Positions 18,510 to 62,908 of a stretch of DNA of 64,000 nt are shown in pieces. Source of the stretch: Pecten maximus (lineage: Eukaryota). Within the stretch, counting starts at the first letter, position 1; every line of letters begins with the position of its first letter. Position numbers and translations under genes: made by a program. The notes beneath the pieces are model-generated. The model made no database searches and was not told the DNA's origin. It saw only the letters and a program-made list of their open reading frames with translations. The stretch lies in NCBI RefSeq assembly GCF_902652985.1, contig NC_047021.1:26164001-26228000 (forward strand), given 5' to 3'.

Positions 18510-19575
18510 AGTAGAACACACATACCCTTACGGAACACCTGGAATAGAACACACGTACCCTTACGGAACACCTGGAATAGAACACACGTACCCTTACGGA
18601 ACACCTGGAGTAGAACACACGTACCCTTACGGAACACCTGGAGTAGAACATACGTACCCTTACGGAACCCCTGCAGTAGAACACACGTACCCTTATGGAA
18701 CACCTGGAATAGAACACACGTACCCTTACGGAACACCTGGAGTAGAACACACGTACCCTTATGGAACACCTGGAGTAAAACACACGTACCCTTACGGAAC
18801 CCCTGCAGTAGAACACACGTACCCTTACGGAACCCCTGCAGTAGAACACACGTACCCTTATGGAACACCTGGAGTAGAACACACGTACCCTTACGGAACA
18901 CGTGGAGTAGAACACACGTACCCTTACGGAACCCCTGCAGTAGAACACACGTACCCTTACGGAACACGTGGAGTAGAACACACGTACCCTTACAGAATAC
19001 CTGGAGTAGAACACACGTACCCTTACGGAACACCTGGAATAGAACACACGTACCCTTACGGAACACCTGGAATAGAACACACGTACCCTTACGGAACACC
19101 TGGAATAGAACACATGTACCCTTATGGAACACCTAGAATATAACACAGGTACTTTTAGGGAACACCTGGAGTAGAAAACTCGTACCCTTACGGAACACGT
19201 GGAGTAGAACACACGTACCCTTACGGAACACATGGAATAGAACACACGTACCCTTATGGAACACCTGGAATATAACACAGGTACTTTTAGGGAACACCTG
19301 GAGTAGAAAACACGTACCCTTACGGAACACGTTGAGTAGAACACACGTACCCTTACGGAACACCTGGAGTAGAACACACGTACCCTTATGGAACACCTGG
19401 AGTAGAACACACGTGCCCTTATGGAACACCTGGAATAGAACACACGTACCCTTATGGAACACCTGAAGTAGAACAGACGTACCATTACGGAACACCTGGA
19501 GTAGAACACACGTACCCTTACGGAACACCTGGAATAGAACACACGTACACATGTACCTTACAGAGTACCTGGAGT
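18510..19575. repeat. 33-bp minisatellite, ~32 copies, upstream of FAS1-A
   Basis: Unit GGAGTAGAACACACGTACCCTTACGGAACACCT; a diverged variant unit recurs at 132-bp spacing (about 19135 and 19267). Confidence 0.95.
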
Positions 19576-20236
19576 TATTCTCTATGACCAAAATGCCTCA
19601 AAGAAAATAAACATCTTGTTGATATTCTATAATTGATAAAAACAATGAATTAATAATAATGCAGTTATAATTCTATACCTTTCAGCATGCATATACATAT
19701 TCGCTGATCATATGTTTTCGTGCTACACACATGCATATTAAAATCACCACGAATATTTCCAGCTGTACTGTGATAAGTTTTATGACATGCATACGTAACT
19801 CATGCAGGTTTAAAACCGGTGACGGCTCGCCCCTTTCACAACAAATCTCAGTCAATAGTTTTGGTTTGGTTTATTTTGTTTAAGGACATGCCCGAGTTTT
19901 TCAAACAATAGAAGTCCATTGCAAACATAATAAAAACACCAGGTTATACATATCTAGTTGATGAACTACTTATTTTTACCTGCTGTTTATTATCATTACT
20001 GTTTAAAACGTGAATAATATTTTATCATCGTTTTGCAGAATGAATGTTTTATTGAAATATTGCAATGCTATGCACAGTATATTGTATAAAAATCGCAGTC
20101 CTATTTATCGTCTATAGTATATAAATATTCGATTTCAGACTGAATATAGCTGTCAATTTCAAATGCTTTATTATTGCTCCTCAACGCCAATGTAACAAAC
20201 TTTCCCATCCTCGATGTACACGAAGGTGTAGAGTTT

Positions 20237-33700: not shown

Positions 33701-34776
33701 TTGTTGAGGCTATTTCTCATTTATTTACTATGGTTACGACTAAAGTCATTTAGATAGTCGTGTTGCCATGTAATAATCAATGAAGAACTCTTCCTCGATA
33801 TTCCAGGGTTACGTCTACTTTGGCTTTGTGTAGAGAGCAAAAGTAAACGTAACCCATATATTATTGAGGATGTAGATAACTGTACCTTGCGGACGAATTT
33901 CCTGTGTTTGTACACGTTATACACATTGATCCTGATGGACGGCCCAGCCAGAGTACCAACCAACGTATCGTTCTGTGTCTCATTGTCGATTCGCAGTTCC
34001 TCATTCAACACGTGGTACAATATCACATTCACCAGCTCGGTAACGTTATTGTTCAGTAACTTCATTACGGCGGGCGATAATTTGGAGAAAGCGCTGTTAT
34101 TTGGAGCAAACATCGTCATAGGACCTGCAATAGGAAATAAAATATACTTTTGTTGACGAATAAACAATACCACGACGTCAATTTTAAAGGAAGAAACTGA
34201 ACAGTGAAATTCACTTAAACGATAACCACCGAATGCGAGGGCACATGTTCACTGGGAGATGGGAAAGTTATACTCCAGTAGAGTGTCTTCTTCACCAAGT
34301 TTGGTATCCGTCATTTTGCATCCTGTCTGTCACGAGTAAATCATGGTGCTGCTCTGACCACATCTAACGCTAGTATCAAACTGAACCTCAATCTAACGCT
34401 AGTATCAAACTGAACCTCAATCCAAAATCTAGTTGACATGAACCACGTCTGAAGCATGTCCTGTTACTATACAAGAGCATCACTATTGGTTGGAAAACAA
34501 GTGTGTTTGAGTTTGGGATATTTTAGGTCACGAGCAACATTGGGTAACTGGACATATTACACAAGAAAAAGAAGAATTGCAGATGACCCCGGATTAATAT
34601 ACTTTTATAGGCTTACCTGGTGCAGAGAGGGGCTGTCCAAGACTAGCCACGTTGATGAAGTTAGCGAAGATCGTAGCCCCGACCTTGGCAGCCAGATCTG
34701 GCAGGTAAACGTCATATTGTCCATAGGCAGGGGATAACGAGCAGAACATCAAAATCACCAAAGACAGAGAGGCCAT
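24712..34776 (-). CDS. Secreted two-FAS1-domain protein B, 6 exons: 34776-34617, 34124-33886, 32309-32123, 27234-27133, 25738-25619, 24833-24712; ~309 aa
   Basis: Signal peptide MASLSLVILMFCSLSPAYG; H1 TMFAPNNSAF and TIFAPTDAAF; YH ILYHVL and LTYHIC; H2 NGVLHVLNGVL and NGVVHGMDTVL. GT-AG introns, phases 1,0,1,1,1; 930 nt in frame. Confidence 0.9.
26194..27030. repeat. 63-bp minisatellite, ~13 copies, intron 4 of FAS1-B
   Basis: Unit GATAAGATTGTATCCCCTGTATGATATGATCATCTGTCTATATAAAACAACATTATGTTACAA. Confidence 0.95.
28102..32060. repeat. 49-bp satellite, ~80 copies, intron 3 of FAS1-B
   Basis: Unit CTTAAGTCAGTGTAATATGGGTAGATGATGTCGGGGTTTAATATGACAT, highly homogeneous. Confidence 0.97.
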
Positions 34777-36540: not shown

Positions 36541-39500
36541 ATGTTGAAAAGACTTCGAAATGTACACGTAGTGTTTTGGACGATATTTATAGTACTCCCT
36601 ATAATATTTATCTTTGCCAGGTCTGTGGTATTACTAAGTACTCCTGCACGCCACAAAATACGTAAGTAAATCATCGACGTTTTATATTGACCTAATACTA
36701 ATTTGAATATGTTGAGCACATACCTATGGATAATCTAAAAGCAAAATCGATTTGTCACATTTTGATTCAACTGTATTTAGCGATGAGAGCTGCTAAATCA
36801 CTTTACCGTATACATCAATATGTACTTTAAAACAATATGTTGCAATAGCTGGTCTTAAATGTTCTCATTTTGTGATTTTTCACAGGAAAGCTCACAAACT
36901 TCCCGAATGTCGCCAAACAAGCCTTACATGTGCAGCACCCTAAAGTAAAAACGGAAGCTGATATCATGATAGTCGGGTATATCCGTGGAGGGTCAACATT
37001 CCTGGGAGAGCTGATGGGGATCAGAAAGGATAGTTTTTATCTGTATGAACCGCTGTACAGACTCAGTAAACTTGGCTACTACAAACCTGGGTATCATTGT
37101 AACACTATGGACACCTACTGTACGTAAGTATTGTAAATCTTACATATCTTACATCTGTCTACAGCATCTTCAGTTAAGGTATACTAATAACAAGATAAAC
37201 TCGATTAATGCAGATACAAATAGTTATGTTTAATATATATCGTAATGAAATATTACACAGACTTGTTTTTCAGTGGAATAGGTGAATTGATATCTTCGCA
37301 ATATCAGAAATAAGATAGTTTAAATCCTAGCATATATCTGTTACAACGGAGGACGTAATATGGAAGACCCCTCTCTAACACCAACTCTAGGCTTTCCTCT
37401 AAATGCTGTATTTCTTGAGTTACTCTGAATAGCTGTAATAACTTCCCTTCCTCGATATTTACAGTAAATTCACATCCTATCCCCGTCCTCGATATTTACA
37501 GTACAATTGACAAGCTATCTCCGTCCTCGATATTTACAGTACAATTGACAACCTACCCCGTCCTCGATATTTACAGTACAATTGACAACCTATCCCCGTC
37601 CTCGATATTTACAGTACAATTGACAACCTATCCCCGTCCTCGATATTTACAGTACAATTGACAACCTATCCCCGTCCTCGATATTTACAGTACAATTTAA
37701 TCCTACCCCCGTCCTCGATATTTACAGTACAATTGACAACCTACCCCGTCCTCGATATTTACAGTACAATTGACAACCTATCCCCGTCCTCGATATTTAC
37801 AGTACAATTTACATCCTACCCCCGTCCTCGATATTTACAGTACAATTGACATCCTATTCCCGTCCTCGATATTTACAGTACAAAGTTATTTTCCTTTGCA
37901 AGCGAAAATTGCATTCAAAAATGAATAGATGAATAGACTTGTTCAGATTAAAGGCACTGATAACAATGGAACACAAACAACAATACCCTGCCGACATATG
38001 AGCTGTCAGACAAGTTAAACGTCACGGATTCAAAGAATGTGACTTTTCAGCACATAAGAGACAACCAAACATCACCTTACAAACTTCAAATTTGTACATT
38101 TGTTTCGGGTATATCTTTTTATATCGTGATTGTTCCAGAATTTAATATTGACAATGTTGCATTAGAAACAAATAATTTGGTATTGTTTACTATTGATTCC
38201 CAGACTCACGAAGCATTAATAATATCCCTATTACTTTCCCAGCTGACAATGCAACATATATTGAATCCTACTCCCCGTGTCATTTTTTTCTATTTCAAGT
38301 TATCATATGAAACATCGCAACAATTTCCTGTCGATTACAAACTTTGTCATGTTGTGGTAAACAATGTCACGATTTGTTTATGAGATACATTGTAAATACA
38401 CGATACATGAAACTGTGGTAAATGATTTCATATTGAAGGTCATTGGAGCTAATCTATGATGACACATGGGCATGTTAGTGTAGAACTTCTCTGTGCAAAG
38501 TGGTATTGTATTACACTTTAATTGTACATGTGGGTTAAATCAGTCGAGTATTCTGTGTTGATGTGCGTGTTATGTGCATATTTAGATATATATGACTATG
38601 TACGTATTTTGGAATTCCATTTTTATTGATGTACTTTATACTTTATAGACTGTTAAGGGGTTACAAAAGATAAGTTCACATCAATAGCACATCCTGTGCC
38701 ATACACACCCTCGTACTGAATTTGTTGCGCTAATACACATAGAATGAGATATTGCGTAGGTGTTCTTTCGTCAAACGATTCTCTGCCTACTGCTAGCAAC
38801 ATACTTCTCCACGAAGTACGGCCTAGTGCGTCCAGTAGTGAATAACATACGTTTTGACGATACAAGAATAAAACCCGGTATCAGTAAAAAGTGCCCATTC
38901 AATCAGTATAAAACACATATTTATGATGAGGTTTTGTTATCTCCAGAATCTCGAATTTTGGTGTCTTTCAGTAATTTCTCGATGCCATGTTTCAGCTCTC
39001 GTCACCATACTCGATATATGAGATTAAAAAAGCGAGCCTTGTAATGTTTGGTTATCACGTGTATGCCGTTTTGTGCTAAATACATATCGAATTAGCATGA
39101 CTAAACCGTCCTCAGTGAATACCTTTGACATGTTAGTTCCATCTCATGTGATATAAGTTGTCGCGTTTAAAATTACCGTCGACAACGCTTCGCTATACAA
39201 CTTCTAAGCTGGATACAACAAACGTAACCTAAACAATTGGATTTAATGAGGTTTTGACGGTAACGAGATTTTTCATTCTAAAGTTGGTACATGTTAACTA
39301 ATAGTGCGGCTCAAAGATACTTCTTATACGTTCAGTGTCGGTACGTATTGCTAGGAGAAATTTGCCTATCTTTCTTTATGTTTGTCTTTTCCAGTGGAGC
39401 GATGAAAATGGATATGCATGCCCTTGGTTTTCTTAAATCCATATACAGCTGTGATTTCCGACTGATGGAGGGCAAGATATCGCTTTGGAGTTTTGCCAAG

Positions 39501-40217
39501 GGACGTGGAGACTTCAACTGGACAAAGTCACTAACAGACTGCAATGGACAGTTTCAAAATTGTTTCAACAAACAAATCCGCCGATGCGTTAGTGCAACAT
39601 CTATAGTTACCAAGGTCGTAAGAGTGACCGTAGGTTTAGTAGGTAGAATGCTTCACAAGTATCCTAATTTGAAAATTGTGCACTTAATGAGAGATCCACG
39701 AGCTGTGATTAACTCAAGGATGGAAATATGGCCATCAAATACAAAGAATATCCTAGAGTCTGCACGCAGTCTGTGTCGGAAAATGAAGGAAGATTTCATG
39801 GATTCTAAGCGATTGCTAATACAAAATCCTAATAGGGTTCGCACTGTGTTTTATGAGGATTTAGCAATGGACCCGATCACCGTTACAAAAGATTTATATA
39901 AATTTGCAAATTATAGTTTTACTGCAGATGATGAAATAAGAATCAGACAAATGACCGAATCTGATTTAACTGTGGAAAAGGCACAGCGTAAATGGAGCTT
40001 GTTCAAACCAAATTCCAGTGATACTGCCCGACAATGGCGCCTGACTATCCCCCCATCCGTTTCACTTCTGACCGGGCTGGGGTGTTCAGAGATATACGAT
40101 ATGGCTAGATATCCGGAGCTTAAGACAAAGGATGACTTGCGGAACTCTAGTATCCCTCTTAGACTCCCTATAAGCTCAAAATCGCTGTTGCATGACTATC
40201 TCAGTCATAATGGTTGA
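36541..40217 (+). CDS. Golgi carbohydrate sulfotransferase (CHST1/GlcNAc-6-O-sulfotransferase-like), 3 exons: 36541-36661, 36886-37123, 39395-40217; ~393 aa
   Basis: Type II membrane anchor (VVFWTIFIVLPIIFIFA); 5'-PSB-like YIRGGSTFLGE and FYLYEP; 3'-PB LKIVHLMRDPRAVINSR; YEDL; terminal W-R. GT-AG introns phases 1 and 2; 1182 nt in frame. Confidence 0.88.
37449..37882. repeat. 37-38-bp minisatellite, ~11 copies, intron 2 of sulfotransferase
   Basis: Unit CCCCGTCCTCGATATTTACAGTACAATTGACAACCTAT. Confidence 0.95.
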
Positions 40218-41650: not shown

Positions 41651-44600
41651 TTAAACACTGGTGCGCCCCCTTGACTGAGTGACCGGATGTAGTAACTCTA
41701 CGTGTGACAATCGCGCCATCTGGAAGCTTCCTCTACCATTCTGCTGCTGTAGGAAATCATTTGAATGGCAGCCCTGGAGAGACGCGGGTTTAAGACCGTA
41801 GTGTTTGTAGTGGTAGAGAAGCTTGTGTAGGTCTGGGAACGTCTCGCCTTTGAATATGAAATAAGACAACTGCCCGTTCTCTTGTGTCATGTATATGGCA
41901 TAATGGATCAACTTCCTCAGGTGACTGAAAGCAGAAACGGCGGTTTACTCATTTAAAACGGCGGTTTACTCATTTAAATCAAGATATTTATAGGACGAGT
42001 AATTCTTAATCTCCTTATCCGATTGTCCAGTTATCTTAATCCGAAATCAATTGGAACACAATGTTATATTTCCTGTTTCACAAAAAAAAATATTATAACA
42101 CGGAAAGGCTACAAAAATCTATTTTTGAAAAGTTGTATACTGTATAAGCGGGAAATAAAATGTTTATATAATATTGATTGAAGCTGATGGAGGGCAAAAC
42201 AAACCATGTCAAACTGTCTATGCAATTGTACACCATGAAAAGATAACATTAAAAAGACGATAGCAAATACAGACATTCGTACATTGTAACATGAATCCAA
42301 ATTCTACCATGTTTGCTATGTAACGCCAGTTTTGATTGGTTAAAAACCATGTATTATTTTCCAATAACCCACGCTCGTGCCAATAATACACGCTCGTGAG
42401 TCACGGCTGTTACAATTTTAAATATCTAATATTCACCCGTTTCATAAAAGGTTACTATAGCCGAGTGGGCTAATGTGTTAGTCTTTCAATATATTTTCGT
42501 CACGACGCGAGTTCGAATCCTTACGGAAGCCCCCACTTTTTTTTCTTTTCTTTTATCCTTTTTTTTTAAATTTTCAAAATCAATGCCATATGATAGATGC
42601 TCTTGATCGTAGTACTGTATTGCCTGTATATTTCATCAACAAATAATGCAATACTCAAGAAATAAATTACAAGGTTTTCCCGGGGTTTCTTTGCTGTTTT
42701 TCTATTAGAAAGAGGTCGATCTCAGAACTAAACAGTACATGGTAGAATAGAAATAATCAACTTTGACTCGTGTATTGTTGCAGGATATACAACTCGGACT
42801 CGGATATTTTGCAATTTTAATTAATAACTCAGGCCTGCGGCCTTCGTTATTAATTTAATTGCAAAATATCCTCATCCTCGTTGTATATCCTGCAATAATA
42901 CACGAATCATCGTTAATTATTTCTTAAGTAAACTGCATATGATACGTGAATTGAAATTTTTGTTGTGCTTTAAAAGAATTTCTAATGAAAATTTCCCGAA
43001 TTTTATTTTTGGCTCTAGTGTATCTATCTCTCACTCTGTACTAATATCTCCTGTAGTACAACCCTTTGATATTACACGTTGTAGAAGCTACTAGTGAACG
43101 TACGTCCTTGAGGTTCTCCGTTGCCTTTATGTCGTGTTCTGATTCATTAGTGTCACAATTCATAAGTGTACATGGCGTTCGTTTGACACCAAGATTAAAT
43201 AGTAAAAGTTATTTAATAATAGGGCTATTGCAACCCATCTCCCGATTTAATTGATATTTCTTTTGACATATTTGCGTTTCCTCAGTCGTCTCCTAGGTTC
43301 TAACACTAGCGTCACTGACGAGTCCTAGCACTACGAAACAGCTGTATGATGCAGGTTAATCCATGTGTGCTTCTACAATTATACTGTATCTATGATGCTA
43401 CTGTGTCTATGATGTTACTGTATCTATAATTCTACTGTATCTATGATTCTACTGTATCTATAATTCTACTGTATCTATGATTCTACTGTATCTATGATTC
43501 TACTGTATCTATGATGTTACTGTATCTATGATTCTACTGTATCTATGATGTTACTTTATCTATGATGTTACTGTATCTATAATTCTACTGTATCTATAAT
43601 TCTACTGTATCTATAATTATATTGTATCTATAATTCTACTGTATCTATGATTCTACTGTGTCTATGATGTTACTGTATCTATGATGTTACTGTATCTATG
43701 ATTATATTGTATCTATAATTCTACTGTATCTATGATGCTACTGTATCTATGATGTTACTGTATCTATAATTCTACTGTATCTATAATTCTACTGTATCTA
43801 TGATGTTACTGTATCTATAATTCTACTGTACCTATGATTCTACTGTATCTATGATTCTACTGTATCTATGATTCTACTGTATCTATGATTCTACTGTATC
43901 TATAATTCTACTGTATCTATAATTCTACTGTATCTATGATTCTACTGTATCTATGATTCTAGTGTATCTATAATTCTACTGTATCTATGGTTCTACTGTA
44001 TCTATGATTCTACTGTATCTATAATTCTACTGTATCTATGGTTCTACTGTATCTATGATTCTAGTGTATCTATAATTCTACTGTATCTATGGTTCTACTG
44101 TATCTATGATTCTACTGTATCTATGATTCTACTGTATCTATAATTCTACTGTATCTATAATTCTACTGTATCTATGATTCTAGTGTATCTATGATTCTAC
44201 TGTATCTATGATTCTACTGTATCTATGATTCTACTGTATCTATGATTCTACTGTATCTATGATTATATTTTATCTATAATTCTACTGTATCTATAATTCT
44301 ACTGTATCTATAATTCTACTGTATCTATGGTTCTACTGTATTTATAATTCTACTGTATCTATGATTCTACTGTATCTATGATTATATTTTATCTATAATT
44401 CTACTGTATCTATAATTCTACTGTATCTATAATTCTACTGTATCTATAATTCTACTGTATTTATAATTCTACTGTATCTATGATTCTACTGTATCTATAA
44501 TTCTACTGTATCTATAATTCTACTGTATCTATAATTCTACTGTATTTATAATTCTACTGTATCTATAATTCTACTGTATCTATAATTCTACTGTATCTAT

Positions 44601-47600
44601 AATTCTACTGTATCTATAATTCTACTGTATCTATGATTCTACTGTATCTATGGTTCTACTGTATCTATGATTCTACTTTATCTATAATTCTGCTGTATCT
44701 ATAATTCTACTGTATCTATAATTCTACTGTATCTATAATTCTACTGTATCTATGATGTTACTGTATCTATGATTCTACTGTATCTATAATTCTACTGTAT
44801 CTATGATTCTACTGTATCTATGATGTTACTGTGTCTATGATGTTACTGTATCTATAATTCTACTGTATCTATAATTCTACTGTATCTATAATTCTACTGT
44901 ATCTATGATTCTACTGTATCTACAATTCTACTGTATCTACAATTCTACTGTATCTATGATTCTACTGTATCTATGATTCTACTGTATCTATGATTCTACT
45001 GTATCTATAATTCTACTGTATCTATGATTCTACTGTATCTATGATTCTACTGTATCTATAATTCTACCGTATCTATAATTCTACTGTATCTGTGATTCTA
45101 CTGTATCTATAATTCTACTGTATCTATGATGTTACTGTATCTATGATGTTACTGTATCTGTGATGTTACTGTATCTACAATTCTACTGTATCTATAATTC
45201 TACTGTATCTATGATGTTACTGTATCTATGATTATATTGTATCTATGATTCTACTGTGTCTATAATTCTACTGTATCTATGATTCTACTGTATCTATAAT
45301 TCTACTGTATCTATAATTCTACTGTATCTATAATTCTACTGTATCTATGATGTTACTGTATCTATGATTCTACTGTATCTATAATTCTATTGTATCTATG
45401 ATGTTACTGTATCTATGATGTTACTGTATCTGTGATGTTACTGTATCTACAATTCTACTGTATCTACAATTCTACTGTATCTATGATTCTAATGTGTCTA
45501 TAATTCTACTGTATCTATAATTCTATTGTATCTATAATTCTACTGTATCTATAATTCTACTGTATCTATAATTCTATTGTATCTATAATTCTACTGTGTC
45601 TATAATTCTACTGTGTCTATAATTCTACTGTATCTATGATTCTACTGTGTCTATGATGTTACTGTGTCTATGATGTTACTGTGTCTATGATGTTACTGTA
45701 TCTATGATGTTACTGTATCTATGATTCTACTGTGTCTATGATGTTACTGTGTCTATGATGTTACTGTGTCTATGATGTTACTGTGTCTATGATGTTACTT
45801 TATCTATGATTCTATTGTATCGAACTTATTTGTTTTCACATGTCCTAATATCCTGTATCCTTTTTGTACAATCCTTTACATCATACAACTCCTGACGTAT
45901 TAGCCTGGAGGTATTATATGATAATTATGACTATCCCATTTGATTCTCAGTCGTCAACGTATTGACAGGTGATCTAAATTATTCTCGCATGAGTAAGTAA
46001 CAAAAGTCTATCACGAAGTATTTAGTGTTAACACAAACATCAAAACAGCAGAAAGTGCTCTTGGTGTAAAGGTATAAACAGAATTGCATTCATATAAATT
46101 CCGAGAAAGTTACTCAAGTGTATTTTTTTCATCCTAGCCTACGCTAACTATTTTGCCTGAAAACATTCCCACGGATTCAGATACACATCTTACAATTAGG
46201 ACTAAATATGCCATGGCTTTAGAATAAAACAGCGTGTCTATCTAAAAAGCCTCTATCTGCCTACATGGAATATCAAATTATGTGTCTACCTGAATGTAAG
46301 AACTACAAATGGCCGCTGTCAAAATAGACCTGAGGGGTAAAAAATGTCTACCTGTCAAACAGAATCATATTTCACAGTTATATGCCTACCTGACAATGAG
46401 AGCTAGGGATATCTGTCTGTTAAATATAATTATATGCCTACCTGACAATGAGAGCTAGGGATACCTGATAAACAGAATTATATGCCTACCTGATAATGAG
46501 AGCGAGGGATACCTGTTAAACAGAATTATATGTCTACCTGACAATGAGAGCTAGGGATACCTGTTAAACAGAAGTATATGTCTACCTGACAATGAGAGCT
46601 AGGGATACCTGTTAAACAGAATTATATGCCTACCTGATAATGAGAGCTAGGGATACTTGTTAAACAGAAGTATATGTCTACCTGACAATGAGAGCTAGGG
46701 ATACTTGTTAAACAGAAGTATATGCCTATCTGACAATGAGAGTTTGGGATACCTGTCTGTTAAACATAAATATATGCTTACCTGACAATGAGAGCTAGGG
46801 ATACTTGTTAAACAGAAGTATATGCCTATCTGACAATGAGAGCTAGGGATACCTGTTAAACAGAATTATATGCCTACCTGACAATGAGAGCTAGGGATAC
46901 CTGTTAAACAGAATTATATGTCTACCTGACAATGAGAGCTAGGGATACTTGTTAAACAGAAGTATATGCCTATCTGACAATGAGAGCTAGGGATACCTGT
47001 TAAACAGAATTATATGTCTACCTGACAATGAGAGCTAGGGATACTTGTTAAACAGAAGTATATGCCTATCTGACAATGAGAGTTTGGGATACCTGTCTGT
47101 TAAACATAAATATATGCTTACCTGACAATGAGAGCTAGGGATACCTGTCTGCTAAACAGAATGATATGCCTACTTGACAATGAGAGCTAGGGATACCTGT
47201 CTGCTAAACAGAATTATATACCTACCTGACAATGAGAGCTAGGGATACCTGTCTGCTAAACAGAATATACCTACCTGACAATGAGAGCTAGGGATACCTG
47301 TCTGCTAAACAGAATTATATACCTACCTGACAATGAGAGCTAGGGATATCTGTCTGGTAAACATAATTATGTGTCTTATCTAAAAATGTGGAACATATGT
47401 GCACTGAAAAAGAGATTTAAACGACTGCCCTGCATAGCTAGCAGTGACCTTAATGGTTTATGCTCGCCTACATGCCACTTACAGATAGGACTACGGACAC
47501 CTACATGACAAGGACTATATACAACTGCTGCTTACCTGACAGTGAGCACAAGCTTCTTCTTCGAGGCCATGTACCACAACAGGTAGTGTCCATCAGAGTT

Positions 47601-50600
47601 GATAAAGTGTCTCATCTTATTTTCCACCTGTCTCATTAGAACAATAAACAAGTCACTTTACGGAGTTACTATCTACATTGTATTGTCTTAGTTTAAATGA
47701 AATACATAACTTAATTAGCCCGTGTGTTTGATTCTGATTAAATTACACCAACATGTAAATGTTTCCCCAGCTCAATAACACTCACCGTGTTCTCATTATC
47801 CCTCGGACTCCATTCCAGGTATCTACCCAACACCTTGTTTAGGTGTACGAACTTTGAATCAGCGCCTCCTGACCTGCTGCTGGGGTACGGTGCTGGTCTG
47901 TTGTTGCGTGGGGGTAGCGTTGGGGGCGTGTCTTGACGACTAGATGAAATCTGATGACACCTATCTACCTTTCTGGCTGGTAGTGGTGGTACTGTTTGCA
48001 TCTCTGTTGGTTGAGGACAAATATCGTCTACATTGTATGACATTGTATGTGTCTCGGGAAAGTTAAAACGAGGCGATACAGTATTTGTCCTGCCATTGTC
48101 CGAAATTGGAATCTCCACTTCTTGTGTCCTGTCTGGCTCGTGTGGATATACTCGAGGGGTTGAATGATGCGTTGCATCCATATCACTATTCGCATTTTTA
48201 AATACATCATCCGCGTCATCGCAATGTTCTATAGGACTTCTGTGCTGACGAGTAAACATGTCACCGATTGTCCCCAGATTATGCCCGTGCATTACCTGTA
48301 CGTTATCGAAAGTGAATCGTCCGATGTTCGTTTCTTTGTAGGTCATAGTTTCCCTGTTTAAACGTTGATAGGATGCTGTCGTATCGGATACGGACCGACC
48401 CATTACATGGGGACGTGTCTCCACCAAACCTTCTGTGTCATTTTCCATTGTGATATTTTCGGTTACGACTCTTACAAGCTTGCAGTGTGTCTGGCTGTGG
48501 TAAGGCGCCTTCACGAATGTCTGTTCCAAGTCGTCATCATGAAAATCCTGGCAATGTTGAGCGTGGGATGACACTCGTTGGAAACTTTTGTATCCGGAAG
48601 TTTCTGGCGATATTTTGTCCAAATCAGATTTGTTATTTGTCCCTTTCATGTCCACATCCATATCAGTGGTAGACGACACAACGTTTTCATTATCCGAATC
48701 ATCACTCAACTTCCGCCTAGTAGCCTCGCCTTCTTGCTCTGTCCGTGTGACATTACATGTTGTATCTGTCCTGTGAGAAGCTATGGTGAATCGTTCTCTA
48801 CCTAAGCAGGACACGCTTCCGATCTCTGATAGCTCACATGTACAACTACGGCAGTGCAATCCGGACTCGATTTTTCGGAGAGTTCTGTTATTAATTTCCT
48901 TATCCAGTAGTGAGTGAACTGTTTTCTGAAATATGTAAAATCAACAGAATAATGAAAAGAAATGATGTAAATGAACAACTCTTCAAATTCAACACATTAA
49001 CATGCACGTCGTCACAGAGTAAAGACCACGTCGTCACAGAGTCAAGACCATGTCGTCACACAGTCAAGACCAAGTCGTCACACAGTCAAGACCAAGTCGT
49101 CACACAGTCAAGACCAAGTCGTCACAGAGTCAAGACCAAGTCGTCACAGAGCCAAGACCATGGCGTTACACAGTCAAGACCACGTCGACACATAGTCAAG
49201 ACCAAGTCGTCACAGAGAAAAGACCAAGTCGTCACAGAGTAAAGACCATGGCGTTACACAGTCAAAACCACATCGTCACAGAGTAAAGACCACGTCGTCA
49301 CAGAGTAAAGACCACGTCGTCACATAGTCAAGACCAAGTCGTCACAGAGTCAAGACCATGGCGTTACACAGTCAACACCACGTCGTCACAGAGTCAAAAC
49401 CACGTCGCCACAGAGTAAAGACCACGTCGTCACATAGTCAAGACCAAGTCGTCACAGAGTCAAGACCATGGCGTTACACAGTCAAGACCACGTCGTCACA
49501 TAGTCAAGACCAAGTCGTCACAGAGCCAAGACCATGGCGTTACACAGTCAACACCACGTCGTCACATAGTCAGGACCACGTCGTCACAGAGTAAAGACGA
49601 AGTCGTAACAGAGTCATGACCACGTCGTCAAAGCGTCGAGAACACTTCACCCTTCACAATGATAATCATTGTCCACTATTGAAAGTGAAAAGTCAGCCTA
49701 AGATTGAATACGTCACATTTGTCACATTCAACTATCCCGTCCCTACTTGTATGTTAAAATGGTATATATATAAATATTTGCTTTTTTACTTATAATTGTT
49801 TTATTATTATAAGTTTTCATTGATTTTTGTTGCTTTATTTTATTTTGGAAAACGTGTTTGACAAATTACCTGGGAAAAAGTTTTAAACTTGCCACAATAC
49901 AAGCATTCCTCTGAAACATAGTCTTTGTGGCCAGGACAGGTTTCAATGCAACGTTTATGATCATCTACTGAAATGTTTCTAACAGTTTGTGTGCCAGTCG
50001 GATGCTCTCTACTGATACCCGACTTATCACCAAGAATATGTCTTTCTCCTGTCTCGACGCTTTTGTGCGGACAAGCGTTACCGCTATAGCGTCCTGTTAA
50101 CTGTTGATTCGGTTCTGACAAGTTGTTTTGCTCCTCCTGATTGCGGTAATGAGTACATTCTAGATATGTTGTCAAGGAAATTCCTTTACCGGAGCGCCTT
50201 TTTCGGCGTACGGACAAATGCATGCCCTGAAAACGAGGAACATAAAATGATGTACTATGTATGATATAAAGTTATATAGAACGCAACACTTACACAAATA
50301 TTGAATTGACTTTTGATTGACTGTGAAAATGTTATGTTTTATTCAGAGAAATTGAATGGTATATTACTTTAAACTGATGTGCTCTGTCTGTCCATGCCGC
50401 GCAGATCTCATAATCCTGTAGCTCCCCGCCGAAGACATTTTCCAGACTATCCTTGAGCGTCGCCTGGCAACGGGTTGGCACGGTAAGGAAGTAAGGTTTG
50501 ACTGTGTCACACGGGACTGTCTCATCTGTTATCTTCAGGTGCAGCTTCATCGAGAGTAAGTCTGAAAGCATGGACCAGGACAGTGTAAGATATTAATTAA

Positions 50601-53600
50601 AAACTTTACAGGTAATATTAATTATACTGTATTACCTGTGTTATATTCCTATTTACTCTGTATTATTGTCAGTATATAACCCTGCCAAACAAAATCATAA
50701 TTCTCACATAAATGGTGCCGTGATATGATCAACGCTAAACAATGACGTTGTTTTGTCTGACTTCAAATATACTTAGTGTATTGTGACGTCCTTGCTACCG
50801 AATTAAACAAGAATTTCACGGAAGTTGATGTGTCGCCTGCACAGCAAGCTAGTAGATGGATCTCAGATTATCGCACGGAAACCATTGTACCCCGAAACAA
50901 TACATGTAGTTATGTTGCATTAAATATGAATACCATCACGGTGGAATATATCGCTTAAAACGATATAATTAGATTAATGAGTTTTTATTTCCACGAACTG
51001 TATTGTTTTTTGTCAAGAACGGTGTCGTGTACTCATAAGAACAGTTCCCATTAACAATACGAAATTTGATTTTGGAATGCAATGACACTGTAACAGATTT
51101 GATAAAAGAACAATCAAATCTAATGCGGAAATACCAGTATTAAACAGCCTTTGCTAGAAACTTATGGTCATATATAACACGCAGTATTCAATCTGTCTGC
51201 AATCCTGCGAGAATAATCAGACAATAGCTTTCCAAGGAAGGAAGTTTAATGCTTAAATAATGTTTATTTATCTAGGGACGTGACTAAGAGAATTATACAC
51301 GTATTTACATGAACATACTTTTTATTGCCTGTTCCAAAAACACGACACAGTCCAACCGGCCACACTGTTTTAGAGACTCCAATAACACGTATATAGATCG
51401 ACCCCTTTCCTGTTTCGTCCAGTCTCTCAAAACTAGGTATCCCGGTGGCTTGTACTCGGCAGTTGATTGGTGATCAAACTCGTCAATCTTGTCTCTAGAA
51501 TAGCCCATGATTTCAGCAAGGCTTGCCCAGTTACCTCTCGTCATGTTCTGTAGCTTCAGTGACAGTTGATATAATACCTAGTAAAGATACAGACACCAAT
51601 GATATGTATACAGTTATCGTCACATAGTCCATAGGTGTTTAGCACGTGTATAAGTCCAAGACCGATTATAGACTAATATATATAGAAAGGTCTGCAACTC
51701 ATCCGTCCTTCAAAAAATCGTCAATTTCATTCAAAGTGTCGTCAAAATGTTACCAGAAAAGATTTTTCAATGCCGATAGTCTTAATCAAACACTTGCATA
51801 CTCTCTATCTAAACTAAGATCATAAAATTCAAAGTCTCTCTATTAATAAGACATACTCCAAACACTACCCCTGAAAACTCTCTAAGACTAAATCCTTATT
51901 CCAAAGACTCACTCTGAAAACTCTTCCAACAACTCAATCTAACAAGAAATATCTTAAAAAAAAGATAAACGGCATAGTTTTAATGCTGGTGGTTATAATG
52001 TAAAACTACTGGTGAAATAAGTTAACGAACTACATTGTAATTAATAAATGCGCAGTTTCAGCACGGATAACAAAATTATATCAGTTTGAATCATTTTTGG
52101 TGATAATAAGACTGCAAATGTGTCATTTGAATAGATGCATCCACTTATTCAGCTTGCATTCAATTTAAAAGGGACATCACGGTAAAAACGTTGCAATTTT
52201 CACTGAATGTACGCGTTTTGTTCCTTTCCAGTTATGTTTCTGTGCTGTCCCAATGTTTACAGTCAATCCCTATGTCCAGCTTGACCACTCGATTTAGTTG
52301 GGAATCCCCCTCTAAATTTAGAGCGGAAATTATTTTTAAATCATTACGTGACTGTTATGAAATTGTGGCAGCACAAACACACGATAGTTTACAAGGCGAT
52401 ACATATATTTCATCTGGGTTAGTTGGATAACGATATTATACAGTGGTTTAAATGTTAAATAACACGTTCTGTATATATTACGGCACACATATTTATGTGT
52501 AAATAAGTGTAAACATTGTTCATATAGTATAGTGACAGTAGCGATGTACTGGTACAGACTGTATAAATATTACCGAGTTTGTGGAACTATTACAGAGTGT
52601 GTGGAAATCTTATCGAGATTGTCATGACCTACTATCAAACAATCAAGCAGAATACGAGCGGCGTCCGTATTACTGTTGTTTTCATGTTTGAACTGTTACA
52701 GTCTATTGTACTGCTTCCCAAGTTTAATTCTAGTATTGTGTTTGACCCATTTTCCTATTATTCTCTTCATTGCGGAAGCTGTTATCGTTTTCAACCGCAG
52801 TCGATTCACATTGGAAGCCATTTTTGTTTCCATGTGTTTTAGTTTGTTGTGCGCATGCGTTTATCGTATATGTCACAAAATTTTTGCATATTCAGATTGT
52901 TTGATAACCTTTTAATAATTGATAATTGATGTTTTTATGTACATAGGCCTACATCATCGAATTCGAATGGTTATTGTTCAGAAGGTTATTTTTTTTAAAG
53001 ATATACCTAATAATATGATAAAAAATACAAAATAAATATTGGTTTACCGTGAGGTCCCTTTAACTTTGTTTCGTTTTTAACTGTATATCTGCATTTTGCA
53101 TTGACCGCTACATTGACCAATCACATACTTCATCTTGACCAGAACGCCACCTGTCGCGTCATGTCCGGGGCCAAAACAAAATTAGACGACTATGCCGAAA
53201 AAAGACCCTACTCTAAGTTAACAGACCTTTATATATGGCCAGCAAACTATTTTTGACTAGTGACATCACTTGCTAAACCCCACTACATACACTATAGATG
53301 CTAAACTTAACCACCGACACAGTCTAATAATAGAATGACATCATGGTCTATATATACAATCTGTAGGAACCGACTATAAACAGAGCATAATAGACAACAT
53401 CAGATACTGGTCAACAGACAACATCAGATACTGGTCAACAGACAACATCAGATACTGGTACATAGACAACATCAGATACTGGTCAACAGACAACATTTAC
53501 ACTTAAATTCAACAAATGCCTGAACAAGGGAAATCAGCAAAACAAGATAGAGATACTCAGTGAAATATTTAAAGCAGAAACTCAGTAAAATACTCAACAC

Positions 53601-56600
53601 AGAAACTCAGTTAAATACTCAACACAGAAACGCAGTGAAATACTCAACATAGAAACTCAGTTAAATACTCAACACAGAAACTCAGTAAAATACTCAACAC
53701 AGAAACTCAGTAATATCCTCAACACAGAACTCAGTTAAATACTCAACATTGAAACTCAGTAATACACTCAACACAGAACTCAGTTAAATACTCAACACAG
53801 AACTCAGTTAAATACTCAACATAGAAACTCATTTAAATACTCAACACAGAAACTCAGTTAAATACTCAACACAGAACTCAGTTAAATATACTCAACATAG
53901 AAACTCAGTTAAATACTCAACACAGAACTAAGTTAAATACTCAACACAGAACTCAGTTAAATACTCAACATTGAAACTCAGTAATACACTCAACATAGAA
54001 CTCAGTTAAATACTCAACACAGAACTCAGTTAAATACTCAACATAGAAACTCATTTAAATACTCAACACAGAAACTCAGTTAAATACTCAACACAGAAAC
54101 GCAGTGAAATACTCAACATAGAAACTCAGTTAAATACTCAACACAGAAACTCAGTAAAATACTCAACACAGAAACTCAGTAATATCCTCAACACAGAACT
54201 CAGTTAAATACTCAATATTGAAACTCAGTAATACACTCAACACAGAACTCAGTTAAATACTCAACACAGAACTCAGTTAAATACTCAACATAGAACTCAG
54301 TTAGATACTCAACACAGAACTCAGTTAAATACTCAACATAGAAACTCAGTAATATCCTCAACACAGAACTCAGTTAAATACTCAACATTGAAACTCAGTA
54401 ATACACTCAACACAGAACTCAGTTAAATACTCAACACAGAACTCAGTTAAATACTCAACATAGAAACTCATTTAAATACTCAACACAGAAACTCAGTTAA
54501 ATACTCAACACAGAACTCAGTTAAATACTCAACATAGAAACTCAGTTAAATACTCAACACAGAACTAAGTTTAATACTCAACACAGAAACTCAGTTAAAT
54601 ACTCAACACAGAACTCAGTTAAATACTCAACATTGAAACTCAGTAATACACTCAACACAGAACTCATTTAAATACTCAACACAGAAACTCAGTTAAATAC
54701 TCAACACAGAACTCAGTTAAATCAACATAGAAACTCAGTTAAATACTCAACACAGAACTAAGTTAAATACTCAACACAGAAACTCAGTTAAATACTCAAC
54801 ACAGAACTCAGTTAAATACTCAACATTGAAACTCAGTAATACACTCAACATAGAACTCAGTTAAATACTCAACACAGAACTCAGTTAAATACTCAACATA
54901 GAAACTCATTTAAATACTCAACACAGAAACTCAGTTAAATACTCAACACAGAAACGCAGTGAAATACTCAACATAGAAACTCAGTTAAATACTCAACACA
55001 GAAACTCAGTAAAATACTCAACACAGAAACTCAGTAATATCCTCAACACAGAACTCAGTTAAATACTCAACATTGAAACTCAGTAATACACTCAACACAG
55101 AACTCAGTTAAATACTCAACACAGAACTCAGTTAAATACTCAACATAGAACTCAGTTAAATACTCAACACAGAACTCAGTTAAATACTCAACATAGAAAC
55201 TCAGTAATATCCTCAACACAGAACTCAGTTAAATACTCAACATTGAAACTCAGTAATACACTCAACACAGAACTCAGTTAAATACTCAACACAGAACTCA
55301 GTTAAATACTCAACATAGAAACTCATTTAAATACTCAACACAGAAACTCAGTTAAATACTCAACACAGAACTCAGTTAAATACTCAACATAGAAACTCAG
55401 TTAAATACTCAACACAGAACTAAGTTAAATACTCAACACAGAAACTCAGTTAAATACTCAACACAGAACTCAGTTAAATACTCAACATTGAAACTCAGTA
55501 ATACACTCAACATAGAACTCAGTTAAATACTCAACACAGAACTCAGTTAAATACTCAACATAGAAACTCATTTAAATACTCAACACAGAAACTCAGTTAA
55601 ATACTCAACACAGAAACGCAGTGAAATACTCAACATAGAAACTCAGTTAAATACTCAACACAGAAACTCAGTAAAATACTCAACACAGAAACTCAGTAAT
55701 ATCCTCAACACAGAACTAGGTTAAATACTCAACATTGAAACTCAGTAATACACTCAACACAGAACTCAGTTAAATACTCAACACAGAACTCAGTTAAATA
55801 CTCAACATAGAACTCAGTTAAATACTCAACACAGAACTCAGTTAAATACTCAACATAGAAACTCATTTAAATACTCAACACAGAAACTCAGTTAAATACT
55901 CAACACAGAACTCAGTTAAATACTCAACATAGAAACTCAGTTAAATACTCAACACAGAACTAAGTTAAATACTCAACACAGAAACTCAGTTAAATACTCA
56001 ACACAGAACTCAGTTAAATACTCAACACAGAAACTCAGTTAAATACTCAACACAGAAACTCAGTTAAATACTCCATACAGAAACTCAGTTAAATACTCAA
56101 CATAGAAACTCAGTTAAATACTCAACACAGAAACTCAATTAAATACTCAACACAGAAACTCAGTAATATCCTCAACACAGAAACTCAGTTAAATACTCAA
56201 CACAGAAACTCAGTTAAATACTCCATACAGAAACTCAGTTAAATACTCAACACAGAAACTCAGTTAAATACTCAGCACAGAAACTCAGTTAAATACTCAA
56301 CACAGAACTAAGTTAAATACTCAACATAGAAACTCAGTTAAATACTCAACACAGAAACTCAATTAAATACTCAACACAGAAACTCAGTGAAATAATCAAC
56401 ACAGAAACTCAGTGAAATAATCAACATAGAAACTCAGTTAAATACTCAACACAGAAACTCAGTTAAATACTCAACACAGAAACTCAGTTAAATACTCAAC
56501 ACAGAAACTCAGTAATATACTCAACACAGAAACTCAGTTAAATACTCAACACAGAAACTCAGTTAAATACTCAACACAGAAACTCAGTGAAATACTCAAC

Positions 56601-58277
56601 ACAGAAACTCAGTAAAATACTCGATACAGAAACTCAGTAAAATACTCAACATAGAAACTCAGTTAAATACTCAACACAAAAACTCAGTAAAATACTCGAT
56701 ACAGAAACTCAGTTAAATACTCAACAGAGAAACTCAGTTAAATACTCAACATAGAAACTCAGTTAAATACTCAACACAGAAACTCAGTAAAATACTCGAT
56801 ACAGAAACTCAGTTAAATACTCAACACAGAAACTCAGTTAAATACTCCATTCAGAAACTCAGTTAAATACTCAACACAGAAACTCAGTAAAATACTCAAC
56901 ACAGAAACTCAGTTAAATACTCAACACAGAAACTCAGTTAAATACTCAACACAGAAACTCAGTTAAATACTCAACACAGAAACTCAGTTAAATACTCAAC
57001 ATAGAAACTCAGTTAAATACTCAACACAGAACTCAGTTAAATACTCAACACAGAAACTCAGTTAAATACTCAACACAGAAACTCAGTTAAATACTCAACA
57101 CAGAAACTCAGTAAAATACTCAACACAGAAACTCAGTTAAATACTCCATACAGAAACTCAGTTAAATACTCAACACAGAAACTCAGTAATATCCTCAACA
57201 CAGAAACTCAGTTAAATACTCAACACAGAAACTCAGTTAAATACTCCATACAGAAACTCAGTTAAATACTCAACACAGAAACTCAGTTAAATACTCAACA
57301 CAGAAACTCAGTTAAATACTCAACACAGAACTAAGTTAAATACTCAACATAGAAACTAAGTTAAATACTCAACACAGAAACTCAGTAAAATACTCAACAC
57401 AGAAACTCAAATTAGGAACCCACTAATGACTTATGACCCAGGCTGGTAAAAGGACGTGTAACAAATCAAACCAAACCAAACCCACTAAAAACTAAACCCA
57501 ACAATTAAAACAACAAATCAAACCAACCCCACTAAAAACTAAACCCAACAATTAAAACAACAAACCAACACACGATCAAAGACACGTATAGATAGAAAAA
57601 GTCATCACGTTATGGAATACTTGTTGATACAATGTACAAATATTTAAAAAAGAAAGCTGGGCATGCTATGTAAATATACAGGATGCTAATTATATATTTA
57701 CTACGAATGATCATAAACTATTAGAAGTAATCTAATGTCGGGACGGTATAATATAATTTGACATACATTTTAATTAGTAAGGATTGCTTGTTAATCAATT
57801 TGATAATCTTGGAAGATACATGTAAGTGATAATGAGTCAAAGGCATAAAAAGTCTTAAATATCACCATGTGCGTGAAAGTACATTGAGTAACATCATTAA
57901 TATAATATAGGTATAGGACATTACAATCGTATTGAACTGTTTGAGTTCACCATTCTAAGAACAAATTAATGTGGAAGTACATTGGTATACTACGATACTA
58001 CTGAAAACGAGAGTTATAACAATATAAAATGTTCCACTAGAATGGTGTTTAAATGTTAGGATATATTAGAGAAAAAACGAATTTCTAAGTCCCTGGTAAT
58101 ATATCATTAAAGTGTAATACTTACCTCAAGCGTCAACTCCTTGGCTGGTCTGTCCAGGTCCTCGTAAGTCACCTGTCCAGAGTTTTGACCAACACCAGGT
58201 TGTCCAACATGATTTTGACTAGTATGTCCTAAGCATTGCTGACCCACGTGACCAAAGTTAGGTACCATCGGATCCAT
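41651..58277 (-). CDS. Putative signalling adaptor: death domain + RBD/ubiquitin-like domain + Pro-rich linker + atypical SH2; 7 exons: 58277-58125, 51577-51319, 50561-50368, 50226-49870, 48925-47786, 47627-47536, 41924-41651; ~822 aa
   Basis: All six introns GT-AG with matching phases (0,1,0,0,0,2); 2469 nt open; in-frame TAG upstream of ATG 58277. Death domain LSLKL..NWASLAEIMGY..LVLRDW..LLESLKQCGRLDCV; SH2-like DGHYLLW..LVLTVS..LIHYAI..GETFPDLHKLLYHY..LLHPV. Confidence 0.8.
42301..42927 (+). mobile_element. Interspersed non-autonomous element, copy 2 (complete long terminal palindrome; tRNA-like A/B-box cassette at ~42450-42537)
   Basis: Reverse-complement match to 21666-22207; palindrome ~42768-42905 centred on AGGCCTGCGGCCT; A box TAGCCGAGTGG, B box GTTCGAATCC, then T-runs. 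Confidence 0.8.
43383..45820. repeat. 17-bp satellite, ~140 copies, intron 6 of adaptor gene
   Basis: Unit ACTGTATCTAT(A/G)AT(TC/GT)T. Confidence 0.97.
46380..47375. repeat. 48/52-bp minisatellite, ~20 copies, intron 6 of adaptor gene
   Basis: Unit CTACCTGACAATGAGAGCTAGGGATACCTG(TCTG)TTAAACAGAATTATATGC. Confidence 0.95.
49007..49635. repeat. 22-bp minisatellite, ~28 copies, intron 4 of adaptor gene
   Basis: Unit GTCGTCACAGAGTCAAGACCA(A/C). Confidence 0.93.
53392..53495. repeat. 24-bp tandem repeat, ~4 copies
   Basis: AGACAACATCAGATACTGGTCAAC. Confidence 0.85.
53555..57410. repeat. 24/25-bp satellite, ~155 copies with higher-order structure, intron 1 of adaptor gene
   Basis: Unit AGAAACTCAGTTAAATACTCAACAC. 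Confidence 0.97.
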
Positions 58278-60720: not shown

Positions 60721-62908
60721 ATTTTTTTTTTTTTCAGATTCATTTTATTCAGTATCAAAGGCCTCCAGCCCACAGTACATGTTATTACAAATTTAAGTGA
60801 TTGTTCCAAATGGAAAATAGCAATCATTGTTTAACAAATTATAATTTACAAATTCATAATATAAACATGAAAGAAAATAACATTATATAATAATGATACA
60901 TGTAAACACAAATCATTACTGAGATGTATTGATCTCTCTTAATATATTTCAGAGAATTAATTACATCCACACTACATACGTGTTAATCAATTCATACATT
61001 TTGGAGATATTCACCACGAGTTTTAAATGCTCGTTTCAAAAATGTACAAAAAGGTCTACAAGACCGTATATCACACATTAGAAAAGAGAACCTCTCCAAC
61101 ACATTTAAGTAATTCATATCTACAGGTAAATTCAGATACAACTCATTTCTGAGCTCATCATACAAAGAACAAAGACATACAAAATGTATTTCATCTTCAA
61201 GTACTGGTCTGTTACAAACATTTAGACAGTAAATACAAAGTCTGTCATTTCTAGTGGTACCACTCCATCTCCCTGTTTCAATAGCAAGATGATGGTTACC
61301 ACTTCTAAAACATGCAAGTACAGTACGCATATACCTACTCATATTTTGAGTAAGATAATCTTCTTGACAAAAGATAGTGTTTTAAACTGCCTATAAGTAC
61401 ATAACTTATCACTGTCATACAATGCGCCATACCATGATTGTAAAAAAGTATCTACCAATCTGGTTTTAACGTTTTGAAGAAATACAGAAATATCTCCAAA
61501 ACCCTGATTTAACCAAGCTTCATTGAAGCCAAGACTGCCCAGTATTTGTCTCACATGAGTGGCCCAAGTGATTCTACCTGCAAGGTCTAGACTGTACAAC
61601 ATTTCATAACAGGCTTTTGGATACCTTAAAGCTGGCATAGCCATTATTCTCAACCAGTATTTTAATAACTTTAATGTATATGTTTCATGCAGGGAATATC
61701 TCCCAAGTTCACCGTACACAACGTTTCTGCTGGTATTCGAGTTGACACCTAATACTCGTTTACAAAATTTCAAGTGTACAGATTCTATTGTATCACTCCG
61801 GGTAAAACCCCATTACTCCGCACAATAACAGAGTATTGGCGTTACCATATGGTCAAAAAGGTAAAATACTGTGTTTACATCAATGTTACTCTTATACATA
61901 AATTTCTGTATAACAAATGAAGCTTTCTCAGCTTGCTGTGCAAGAGTTTTACAGCAAAGGCCCCATGACATTTTTGGGGTAAAAATAGTACCTAAGTACT
62001 TGTAAAAAATAACAATCTCAATTTGCTCTCCTTTGTAAAACCATTTCTCATTACATTTGACAATTCCACCTCTTCTGAATACAACAATCTTGGTCTTATC
62101 CAGGTTTACTTTCATACCATACTTATCACAGAAAGAAGATACACAGTAAATTTGTTTTTGTAACCCAAGCACTGTATCTGCTAGGCTTGCAATTTCATCA
62201 GCATATAATAAAGACGTAATGTTGTGAACATTTTCATTAACAAAAACACCTCTACATCCATGATTGTCCATTGATTCAAGCAGTTCATTTAAGAACAACA
62301 CAAAAAGTAGCGGACTGATCATACAGCCTTGTCTTGTACCCACAGAGCAGTTGAAAAATTCAGATAACATGAGTTTGTCTACTTTCACACAGGATTTGAA
62401 CTGAGAGTACATAGATGATATAACAAGAAAAAATCTACCTTTGACATTATTTTTCAAAAGGATATATCTTAATAATGTATGCTGAATACTGTCAAAAGCT
62501 TTTGAAAAGTCAATAAAAATACAATATAATCTGCCTTTGCGCTTAGTGACGTACTTTTGTACCATAGCAAATAATGTAAAGATATTGTCAGTAGTACTAT
62601 AGCCAGTTCTACATCCAATCTGATTTTCATAAAGTTTGTCATAAACTTCACACCAAAATCTCAATCTGTTATTCAATATCTTAGTAAATATCTTTCCAAT
62701 TACTGAAGATAAAGAAATACCCCTATAATTATTTGGATTATGTGTGTCACCCTTCTTATGCAATGGAGTGATTACAGCTTCACACCAAGCTGCTGGAAAT
62801 AATCAAGATCCAAGTATAGCATTGAATAACACAGAGAGATATGGTTTCAGGAGTGAATATGCATATTTCGTATGCTCATTCATGATGCCATCAGGACCCG
62901 GAGCTTTT
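60721..62908 (-). mobile_element. 5'-truncated, disabled non-LTR retrotransposon (CR1/L2 group), RT plus C-terminal zinc-finger region
   Basis: KAPGPDGI at the 5' break; PLHKKGD..NYRGISL, FIDFSKAFDS, GTRQGCMISPLLF, YADE, YKYLG; C-terminal HHLAIETGRW..CIYC..EDEIHFVCLC. Stops at 62803-62805 and 61813-61815, frameshift near 61340-61380; AATAAA and A-tail at 60722-60750. Confidence 0.92.

Follow-up and report, generated by a model that had tools for sequence, protein, structure and literature searches.

Signaling through death domains, as in the Toll/IL-1 and TNF receptor pathways, and signaling through tyrosine kinases are normally joined only indirectly. MyD88 has a death domain and a TIR domain, and the Tube/IRAK proteins have a death domain, with or without a kinase, and a C-terminal arm with TRAF6 motifs. 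The SLP-76/BLNK scaffolds carry a SAM domain or a basic region at the N terminus, and Grb7, Grb10 and Grb14 have a Ras-association-type beta-grasp domain upstream and an SH2 domain at the C terminus, together with PH and BPS modules. We know of no human, fly or nematode protein with both a death domain and an SH2 domain. In amphioxus and molluscs, death domains often occur in novel architectures. The death effector domain is a related death-fold module, and tyrosine-kinase signals have been redirected with engineered adaptors in which it is fused to an SH2 or PTB domain (cited in PMC2575513). This report concerns a natural gene of the king scallop, Pecten maximus, LOC117330397, that may make a comparable connection. 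It lies on the minus strand, from 58277 to 41651, of the window analyzed here, a stretch of 64,000 nucleotides (contig NC_047021.1, positions 26,164,001 to 26,228,000) whose own numbering is used throughout. It is a real, single-copy, seven-exon gene for an 822-residue cytoplasmic scaffold with a MyD88-like death domain, a beta-grasp domain, a disordered arm bearing short motifs, and an atypical SH2 domain, belonging to an unnamed family found in molluscs, a hemichordate and amphioxus, and in our judgment it probably acts as proposed below. We interpret the protein as an adaptor with a novel, conserved domain arrangement assembled from known domains.

The seven exons, all on the minus strand, are as follows.

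58277-58125, minus strand, exon 1: start codon at 58277-58275; residues 1-51, with a conserved RPAKEL stretch leading into the death domain
51577-51319, minus strand, exon 2: residues 52-137 and one base of codon 138; the entire Pfam-defined death domain
50561-50368, minus strand, exon 3: residues 139-202; beta-grasp strands 1-3 and main helix
50226-49870, minus strand, exon 4: residues 203-321; final strand of the beta-grasp (205-210), followed by the first part of the disordered linker, which includes a Cys/His-rich patch at about 299-315
48925-47786, minus strand, exon 5: residues 322-701; mostly predicted disordered linker, ending in a Pro-rich stretch, a pre-SH2 helix and the first SH2 residues (W693)
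47627-47536, minus strand, exon 6: residues 702-731 and two bases; end of SH2 helix A, strands B and C
41924-41651, minus strand, exon 7: residues 733-822 and stop codon TAA (41653-41651); SH2 strands D-F, helix B, a BG loop insertion of about 30 residues, and the final strand

Read from the sequence, the internal junctions all have canonical AG acceptors and GT donors, the reading phases agree at all six junctions, and the exons sum to 2469 nucleotides, or 822 codons plus the TAA stop. The exon translations map consecutively and without mismatch onto the 822-residue RefSeq entry "uncharacterized protein LOC117330397 [Pecten maximus]" (P0030), the only leftovers being the split codons of residues 138 (N) and 732 (S). 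Because of this exon-by-exon equality, the start, the end, the seven exons and the length of about 822 residues given in the initial annotation prove exact. Whole-protein analyses used P0030; the exons themselves were compared piece by piece and not joined. A six-frame search of the whole P. maximus genome with P0030 matched this locus alone, and the N terminus is kept across four scallop orthologues.

The distribution of the family is drawn from one exhaustive protein search with the death-domain exon, exon 2, as query. A death domain first and an SH2 domain last recur in Argopecten, Ylistrum, Mizuhopecten, Mercenaria, Ruditapes, Mactra, Ptychodera and Branchiostoma, and most full-length members have a Pfam Death match at the N terminus and an SH2 match at the C terminus. 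The Argopecten, Ylistrum and Mizuhopecten proteins are full-length and show 66-68% identity to the Pecten protein and 55-68% to the Argopecten orthologue P0001. The Mercenaria, Ruditapes and Mactra homologues are longer, at about 1110-1190 residues, and that of the hemichordate Ptychodera flava has 648. Branchiostoma has homologues of 623 residues and a compact form of 339 residues, the latter with nothing beyond the three domains. Three further relatives, of 601-902 residues, are encoded on assembled contigs only 2.2-3.2 kb long; since these contigs leave no space for introns, they are most simply taken as spliced mRNAs. The 902-residue protein of one such contig (P0027) is similar to a gene model from the gastropod Babylonia. 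A homologue search with the family alignment returned the four scallops only, and one with the 339-residue amphioxus protein returned the query alone. All named members are annotated as "uncharacterized" or "hypothetical."

The death domain of exon 2 matches PF00531 at 44.9 bits (cut-off 22.6 bits; E value, 1.3e-11) over profile positions 4-85 of 86, and the same profile matches 21 of 21 family members. The domain, at residues ~38-139, has the fold of a six-helix bundle, and its best structural match in the fold search was the death domain of MyD88. No TIR or Pkinase match was found by Pfam in any exon or full-length homologue. The initial annotation, which had described a MyD88/IRAK-type death domain at the N terminus unaccompanied by TIR or kinase, is thus borne out.

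Short open reading frames from other bivalves (P0003, P0004, P0008-P0010, P0013 and P0015) run into intron-like sequence at the two ends of scallop exon 2. Read-through at the same two points suggests that a single death-domain exon and its limits are conserved among bivalves.

A second folded domain directly adjoins the last death-domain helix, with no linker between them, and occupies residues 141-210 in the scallop and 124-200 in amphioxus. The AlphaFold2 (AF2) model shows the order beta-beta-alpha-beta-(alpha)-beta with predicted local distance difference test (pLDDT) scores of 80-89 in the scallop, the elements in exon 3 being strands 141-150 and 161-168, helix 173-181 and strand 188-190, and the amphioxus model contains the same confident unit. 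All full-length members conserve the domain, along with an invariant or almost invariant Lys-Gly pair ahead of its final strand; in the scallop this pair, K202-G203, spans the exon 3/4 junction. Structure-atlas neighbors include DIX-like, SUMO and YukD models (TM scores of 0.50-0.63), and a viral structure library yielded many ubiquitin matches. A structure-atlas feature search gave no usable match, and whole-model fold searches against PDB returned match lists made up of SH2 and death-domain chains. We are confident that the modeled middle domain is a ubiquitin-like beta-grasp.

It had been called a Raf-type RBD, and here the fold stands, while support for membership in that family is weak. 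The PF02196 profile (cut-off 25.7 bits) has no match in the scallop protein and none at cut-off in the 21 members; the sole subthreshold match among them falls in Ptychodera, exactly on the beta-grasp (residues 149-203; 11.9 bits; E value, 0.23). Searched in six frames with PF02196, the scallop genome yielded five other loci, the beta-grasp exon not being among them. We also aligned small profiles with hhalign, taking as comparators genuine RBD, RA, ubiquitin and PB1 sequences encoded by the scallop itself. The beta-grasp reached P values of 0.004-0.014 (probability, 3-8%) against the five scallop RBDs, 0.025 against RA, 0.048 against ubiquitin and 0.35 against PB1, compared to 0.0097 for a control pair of known homologues, RBD and RA. 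In this register, N/G/E stand opposite the basic Ras-contact residues R/K/R with which helix 1 ends in the scallop RBDs. Raf and RGS14 clusters were among the nearest whole-protein structure neighbors, at low TM scores. The beta-grasp may be a remote relative of the Ras-association class. It cannot be shown to be an RBD, and Ras binding is doubtful.

Beyond the beta-grasp extends a linker of about 460 residues (217-675) that is predicted to be disordered, with AF2 pLDDT values of about 30. Thr (10.7%), Ser (9.1%), Arg, Asp and Glu are abundant, and at 5.7% Pro the label of a Pro-rich linker does not suit it overall, describing only its last ~45 residues. The class II SH3-ligand pattern is PxxPx[RK], and two motifs of this type lie in that segment; a third, upstream, resembles a TRAF6 site.

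Residues 634-639 (47972..47989), minus strand: PPLPAR, of the PxxPxR class II SH3-ligand type; Mizuhopecten has PALPAR
Residues 656-661 (47906..47923), minus strand: PTLPPR, of the PxLP[PA][RK] SH3-ligand type, about 30 residues ahead of the SH2 domain
Residues 552-557 (48218..48235), minus strand: PIEHCD, a putative TRAF6 site by the pattern PxExx[acidic/aromatic], within a conserved block and present in four of four scallops by regular expression and alignment

The PxLP[PA][RK] motif is kept at this place in the four scallops, Mercenaria, Ruditapes, Mactra and amphioxus. The TRAF6-binding consensus is PxExx[F/Y/D/E], with an acidic or aromatic residue last (PMC10776578). At a place comparable to that of PIEHCD, the linkers of Mercenaria (P0011, residues 472-552) and Ruditapes (P0036, residues 598-640) hold 4-6 tandem PxEYRD units, each fitting this consensus. 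We regard the SH3 and TRAF6 motifs, recognized by pattern, as leads and not as findings.

A Cys/His pattern (C..H, C..C, HC..C.C) is also seen at residues ~299-345 (49870-49960 and 48800-48925), kept in the scallops and the P0005 lineage and absent in venerids. It resembles a zinc-binding knuckle; a zinc finger was rejected, the AF2 pLDDT of the region being about 30.

The C-terminal region, at residues ~678-815, has the SH2 fold of a central sheet with two flanking helices. Elements of AF2 within exon 6 (helix 699-709, strands 715-721 and 726-733) have pLDDT values of about 90, and the family profile reaches 4e-8 (SYK) against SH2 domains of PDB. PF00017 matches above cut-off in amphioxus (29.3 and 27.8 bits) and Ptychodera (23.7 bits). 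A tail with the pattern SHV.L..PV is conserved across phyla, preceded by a BG loop insertion of about 30 residues; because the SH2 structural alignments extend to residues 815-822, we take this tail to be the last SH2 strand.

At the FLVR (betaB5) position of the domain, the phosphotyrosine-clamping arginine is replaced in molluscs.

47576-47574, minus strand: TGG codon of Trp719, at the FLVR arginine position of the SH2 domain

In this column the 13 mollusc sequences all have W, Ptychodera has H and the six amphioxus sequences all have R. By motif register against the Pfam consensus, the helix-A arginine position is presumably Glu in molluscs. Among human SH2 domains, only those of RIN2 and TYK2 (His) and of SH2D5 (Trp) are without the FLVR arginine, and TYK2 engages its receptor without phosphotyrosine (PMC7530234). 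Since the arginine is Trp in molluscs, canonical phosphotyrosine binding by their SH2 domain seems doubtful from sequence. The comparison originally drawn with the SH2 domains of SLP-76 and BLNK holds for the fold and not for orthology: the BLNK SH2 domain is one of many tied fold matches, with 14% identity, and the FLVR arginine has been lost.

Two homologues depart from the full SH2 domain. Ruditapes isoform X2 (P0012) diverges from it after strand C, and the Potamilus model (P0006) ends at a point matching the scallop exon 5/6 junction; in both of these and in the Babylonia model, the death domain is the sole Pfam match. Loss of the SH2 domain through alternative splicing, or through truncation of the gene models, may explain the Ruditapes and Potamilus ends.

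MyD88, Tube/IRAK, SLP-76/BLNK, Grb7/10/14 and SH2D5 each share one or two features with the scallop protein and fail a defining one. Where MyD88 has a TIR domain, the scallop protein has the beta-grasp, the long disordered arm and the SH2 domain; unlike Tube/IRAK, it has neither kinase nor pseudokinase, and it has the SH2 and beta-grasp domains that they do not. SLP-76/BLNK orthology was rejected: at the N terminus, in place of a SAM domain or basic region, stand a death domain and a beta-grasp, no SAM match was found by Pfam in the exons or full-length homologues, and no orthology was evident at the sequence level. Grb7/10/14 are alike in the order of a Ras-association-type beta-grasp and a C-terminal SH2 domain, and the top sequence matches to the scallop SH2 domain include those of Grb7, Grb10 and Grb14. 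PH and BPS are theirs only, however, the death domain belongs to the scallop protein, and the scallop beta-grasp is no Pfam RA or RBD member; RA, PH and BPS gave no matches at E values up to 10 in the 21 members, and orthology with this group was rejected as well. The loss of the FLVR arginine is shared with SH2D5 (Trp, as in molluscs) and with TYK2 and RIN2 (His, as in Ptychodera), but the remaining architecture of these proteins is unrelated, SH2D5 orthology was rejected, and the scallop protein's own family retains Arg in amphioxus. A literature search on the locus names and on death-domain/SH2 combinations found no paper on the family. The suggestion that no named family has this domain order accordingly survives in the databases and literature searched, and no clear orthologue in a characterized family emerged. 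With the same layout present in bivalves, gastropods, an acorn worm and amphioxus, this is an old, unnamed adaptor family.

The proposed mechanism is that of an assembly platform, the protein having no catalytic part. Its death domain would join homotypic oligomers of the MyD88/IRAK/Tube type, and the disordered arm would recruit SH3 adaptors and perhaps TRAF6. The mollusc SH2 domain might hold its partner without the canonical phosphotyrosine clamp, like TYK2 and SH2D5, while that of amphioxus, with Arg retained, may still read phosphotyrosine; the beta-grasp could offer a further docking surface. A bolder version, which we put forward tentatively as a possibility, is that the family is ancient among bilaterians, is missing from the standard model organisms and serves as a natural "direct connector" of MyD88-type assemblies to SH2/SH3/TRAF6 networks; its ancestral form, retained in amphioxus, would read phosphotyrosine, molluscs would have fixed Trp to give a phosphotyrosine-independent SH2 domain, and the beta-grasp would represent a new Ras-association-like module. 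Several points weigh against our interpretation. The scallop SH2 domain falls under the PF00017 cut-off of 21 bits, with 16.8 bits for exon 7 alone (E value, 0.0075) and 20.2 bits for Argopecten P0001. The single-transcript case for the scallop comes from comparison across species, and all of the binding partners are inferred. The short motifs may also be due to chance, with ~0.4 occurrences of PxExx[acidic/aromatic] expected in such a linker from a composition estimate.

One alternative is that the gene is an artefact, a neighboring death-domain gene and SH2 gene having been merged by prediction software and by eye; the large 5.6-kb satellite-filled intron between exons 6 and 7 speaks for it. 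We give this almost no credence. Independent gene models and short assembled contigs agree on the domain order, which recurs across three phyla in at least 10 species, with the intron-free contigs and the 339-residue amphioxus protein among the examples; the phases agree at every junction; and the SH2 domain is divided among exons 5, 6 and 7, so that the linker exon 5 and exon 7 must share one mRNA. On this comparative evidence, one gene carries both the death domain and the SH2 domain, and the concern that the two might belong to separate transcripts seems unfounded.

Granted one gene, the initial annotation read it as linking Myddosome-type assembly both to a Ras-family GTPase, via a true Raf-type RBD, and to tyrosine-kinase/SH3 signaling in invertebrate immunity. 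That MyD88 supplies the best structural match to the death domain, that PxLPxR motifs are present, and that separate weak hints of an RBD exist (the Ptychodera match, the hhalign P values beside that of the control, and the Raf and RGS14 neighbors) all speak for it, but we consider it unlikely as a whole: no RBD match reaches the Pfam cut-off in the 21 members, the basic residues of RBD helix 1 face N/G/E, the RA score is nearly equal to the RBD score, and a mollusc SH2 domain without its FLVR arginine is a poor reader of phosphotyrosine. Quite improbable, in our estimate, is a decoy or negative regulator whose death domain caps or poisons the oligomers and whose degenerate SH2 domain and disordered arm merely tether or sequester, the mollusc protein damping signaling. 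The phosphotyrosine pocket without its FLVR and helix-A arginines in molluscs, the lack of a catalytic domain, and an annotated Ruditapes isoform cut within the SH2 domain would suit such a role. The linker motifs are nonetheless conserved. Among molluscs the fold of the SH2 domain, the loop insertion and the terminal strand are strongly conserved too, and Trp is fixed (13 of 13 sequences), which points to a retained binding function and not to decay. The assembly platform with an SH2 domain that may work independently of phosphotyrosine is the reading we prefer.

A natural protein combining a MyD88-like death domain with an SH2 domain is thus conserved from scallops to amphioxus, and we found neither name nor study for it. 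It is a candidate node in mollusc innate-immune wiring. The family also offers a natural series of Arg, His and Trp for how an SH2 domain gives up phosphotyrosine, and an undescribed tandem of death domain and beta-grasp. The gain is small if this is only a lineage curiosity, and RefSeq already lists the gene, its product being annotated as uncharacterized; the frequency of novel death-domain architectures tempers the surprise, while conservation in three phyla and the Arg/His/Trp series raise it.

The introns of the gene contain four large tandem arrays.

43378-45821, tandem array in intron: 17 bp x 144 copies
46378-47353, tandem array in intron: 48 bp x 20 copies
49005-49645, tandem array in intron: 22 bp x 29 copies
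53551-57409, tandem array in intron: 25 bp x 156 copies

The intron arrays explain the pronounced GC and AT skews at 54-58 kb as well as the spurious repeat open reading frames on both strands. Further long tandem-repeat tracts occur in the window at 18439-19597 (repeat open reading frames in all frames) and 28000-32000 (GC skew, +0.54).

Four other coding features are recognizable in the window.

5709-5999 and 10285-11181, plus strand: exons of a rhodopsin-family G-protein-coupled receptor gene (Pfam 7tm_1; E value, 1.4e-28 on the second exon)
15712-16104, 27107-27442, 32082-32309 and 33724-34248, minus strand: multi-exon fasciclin (FAS1) gene (Pfam Fasciclin; E values, 6e-16 and 2e-13 on the two exons tested)
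36876-37124 and 39282-40214, plus strand: sulfotransferase gene lying just short of where the adaptor gene has its 3' end, on the opposite strand (Sulfotransfer_3; E value, 1.8e-12)
60995-62802, minus strand: retroelement reverse-transcriptase open reading frames upstream of the adaptor gene (RVT_1; E value, 1.5e-32), with the frame broken between the pieces

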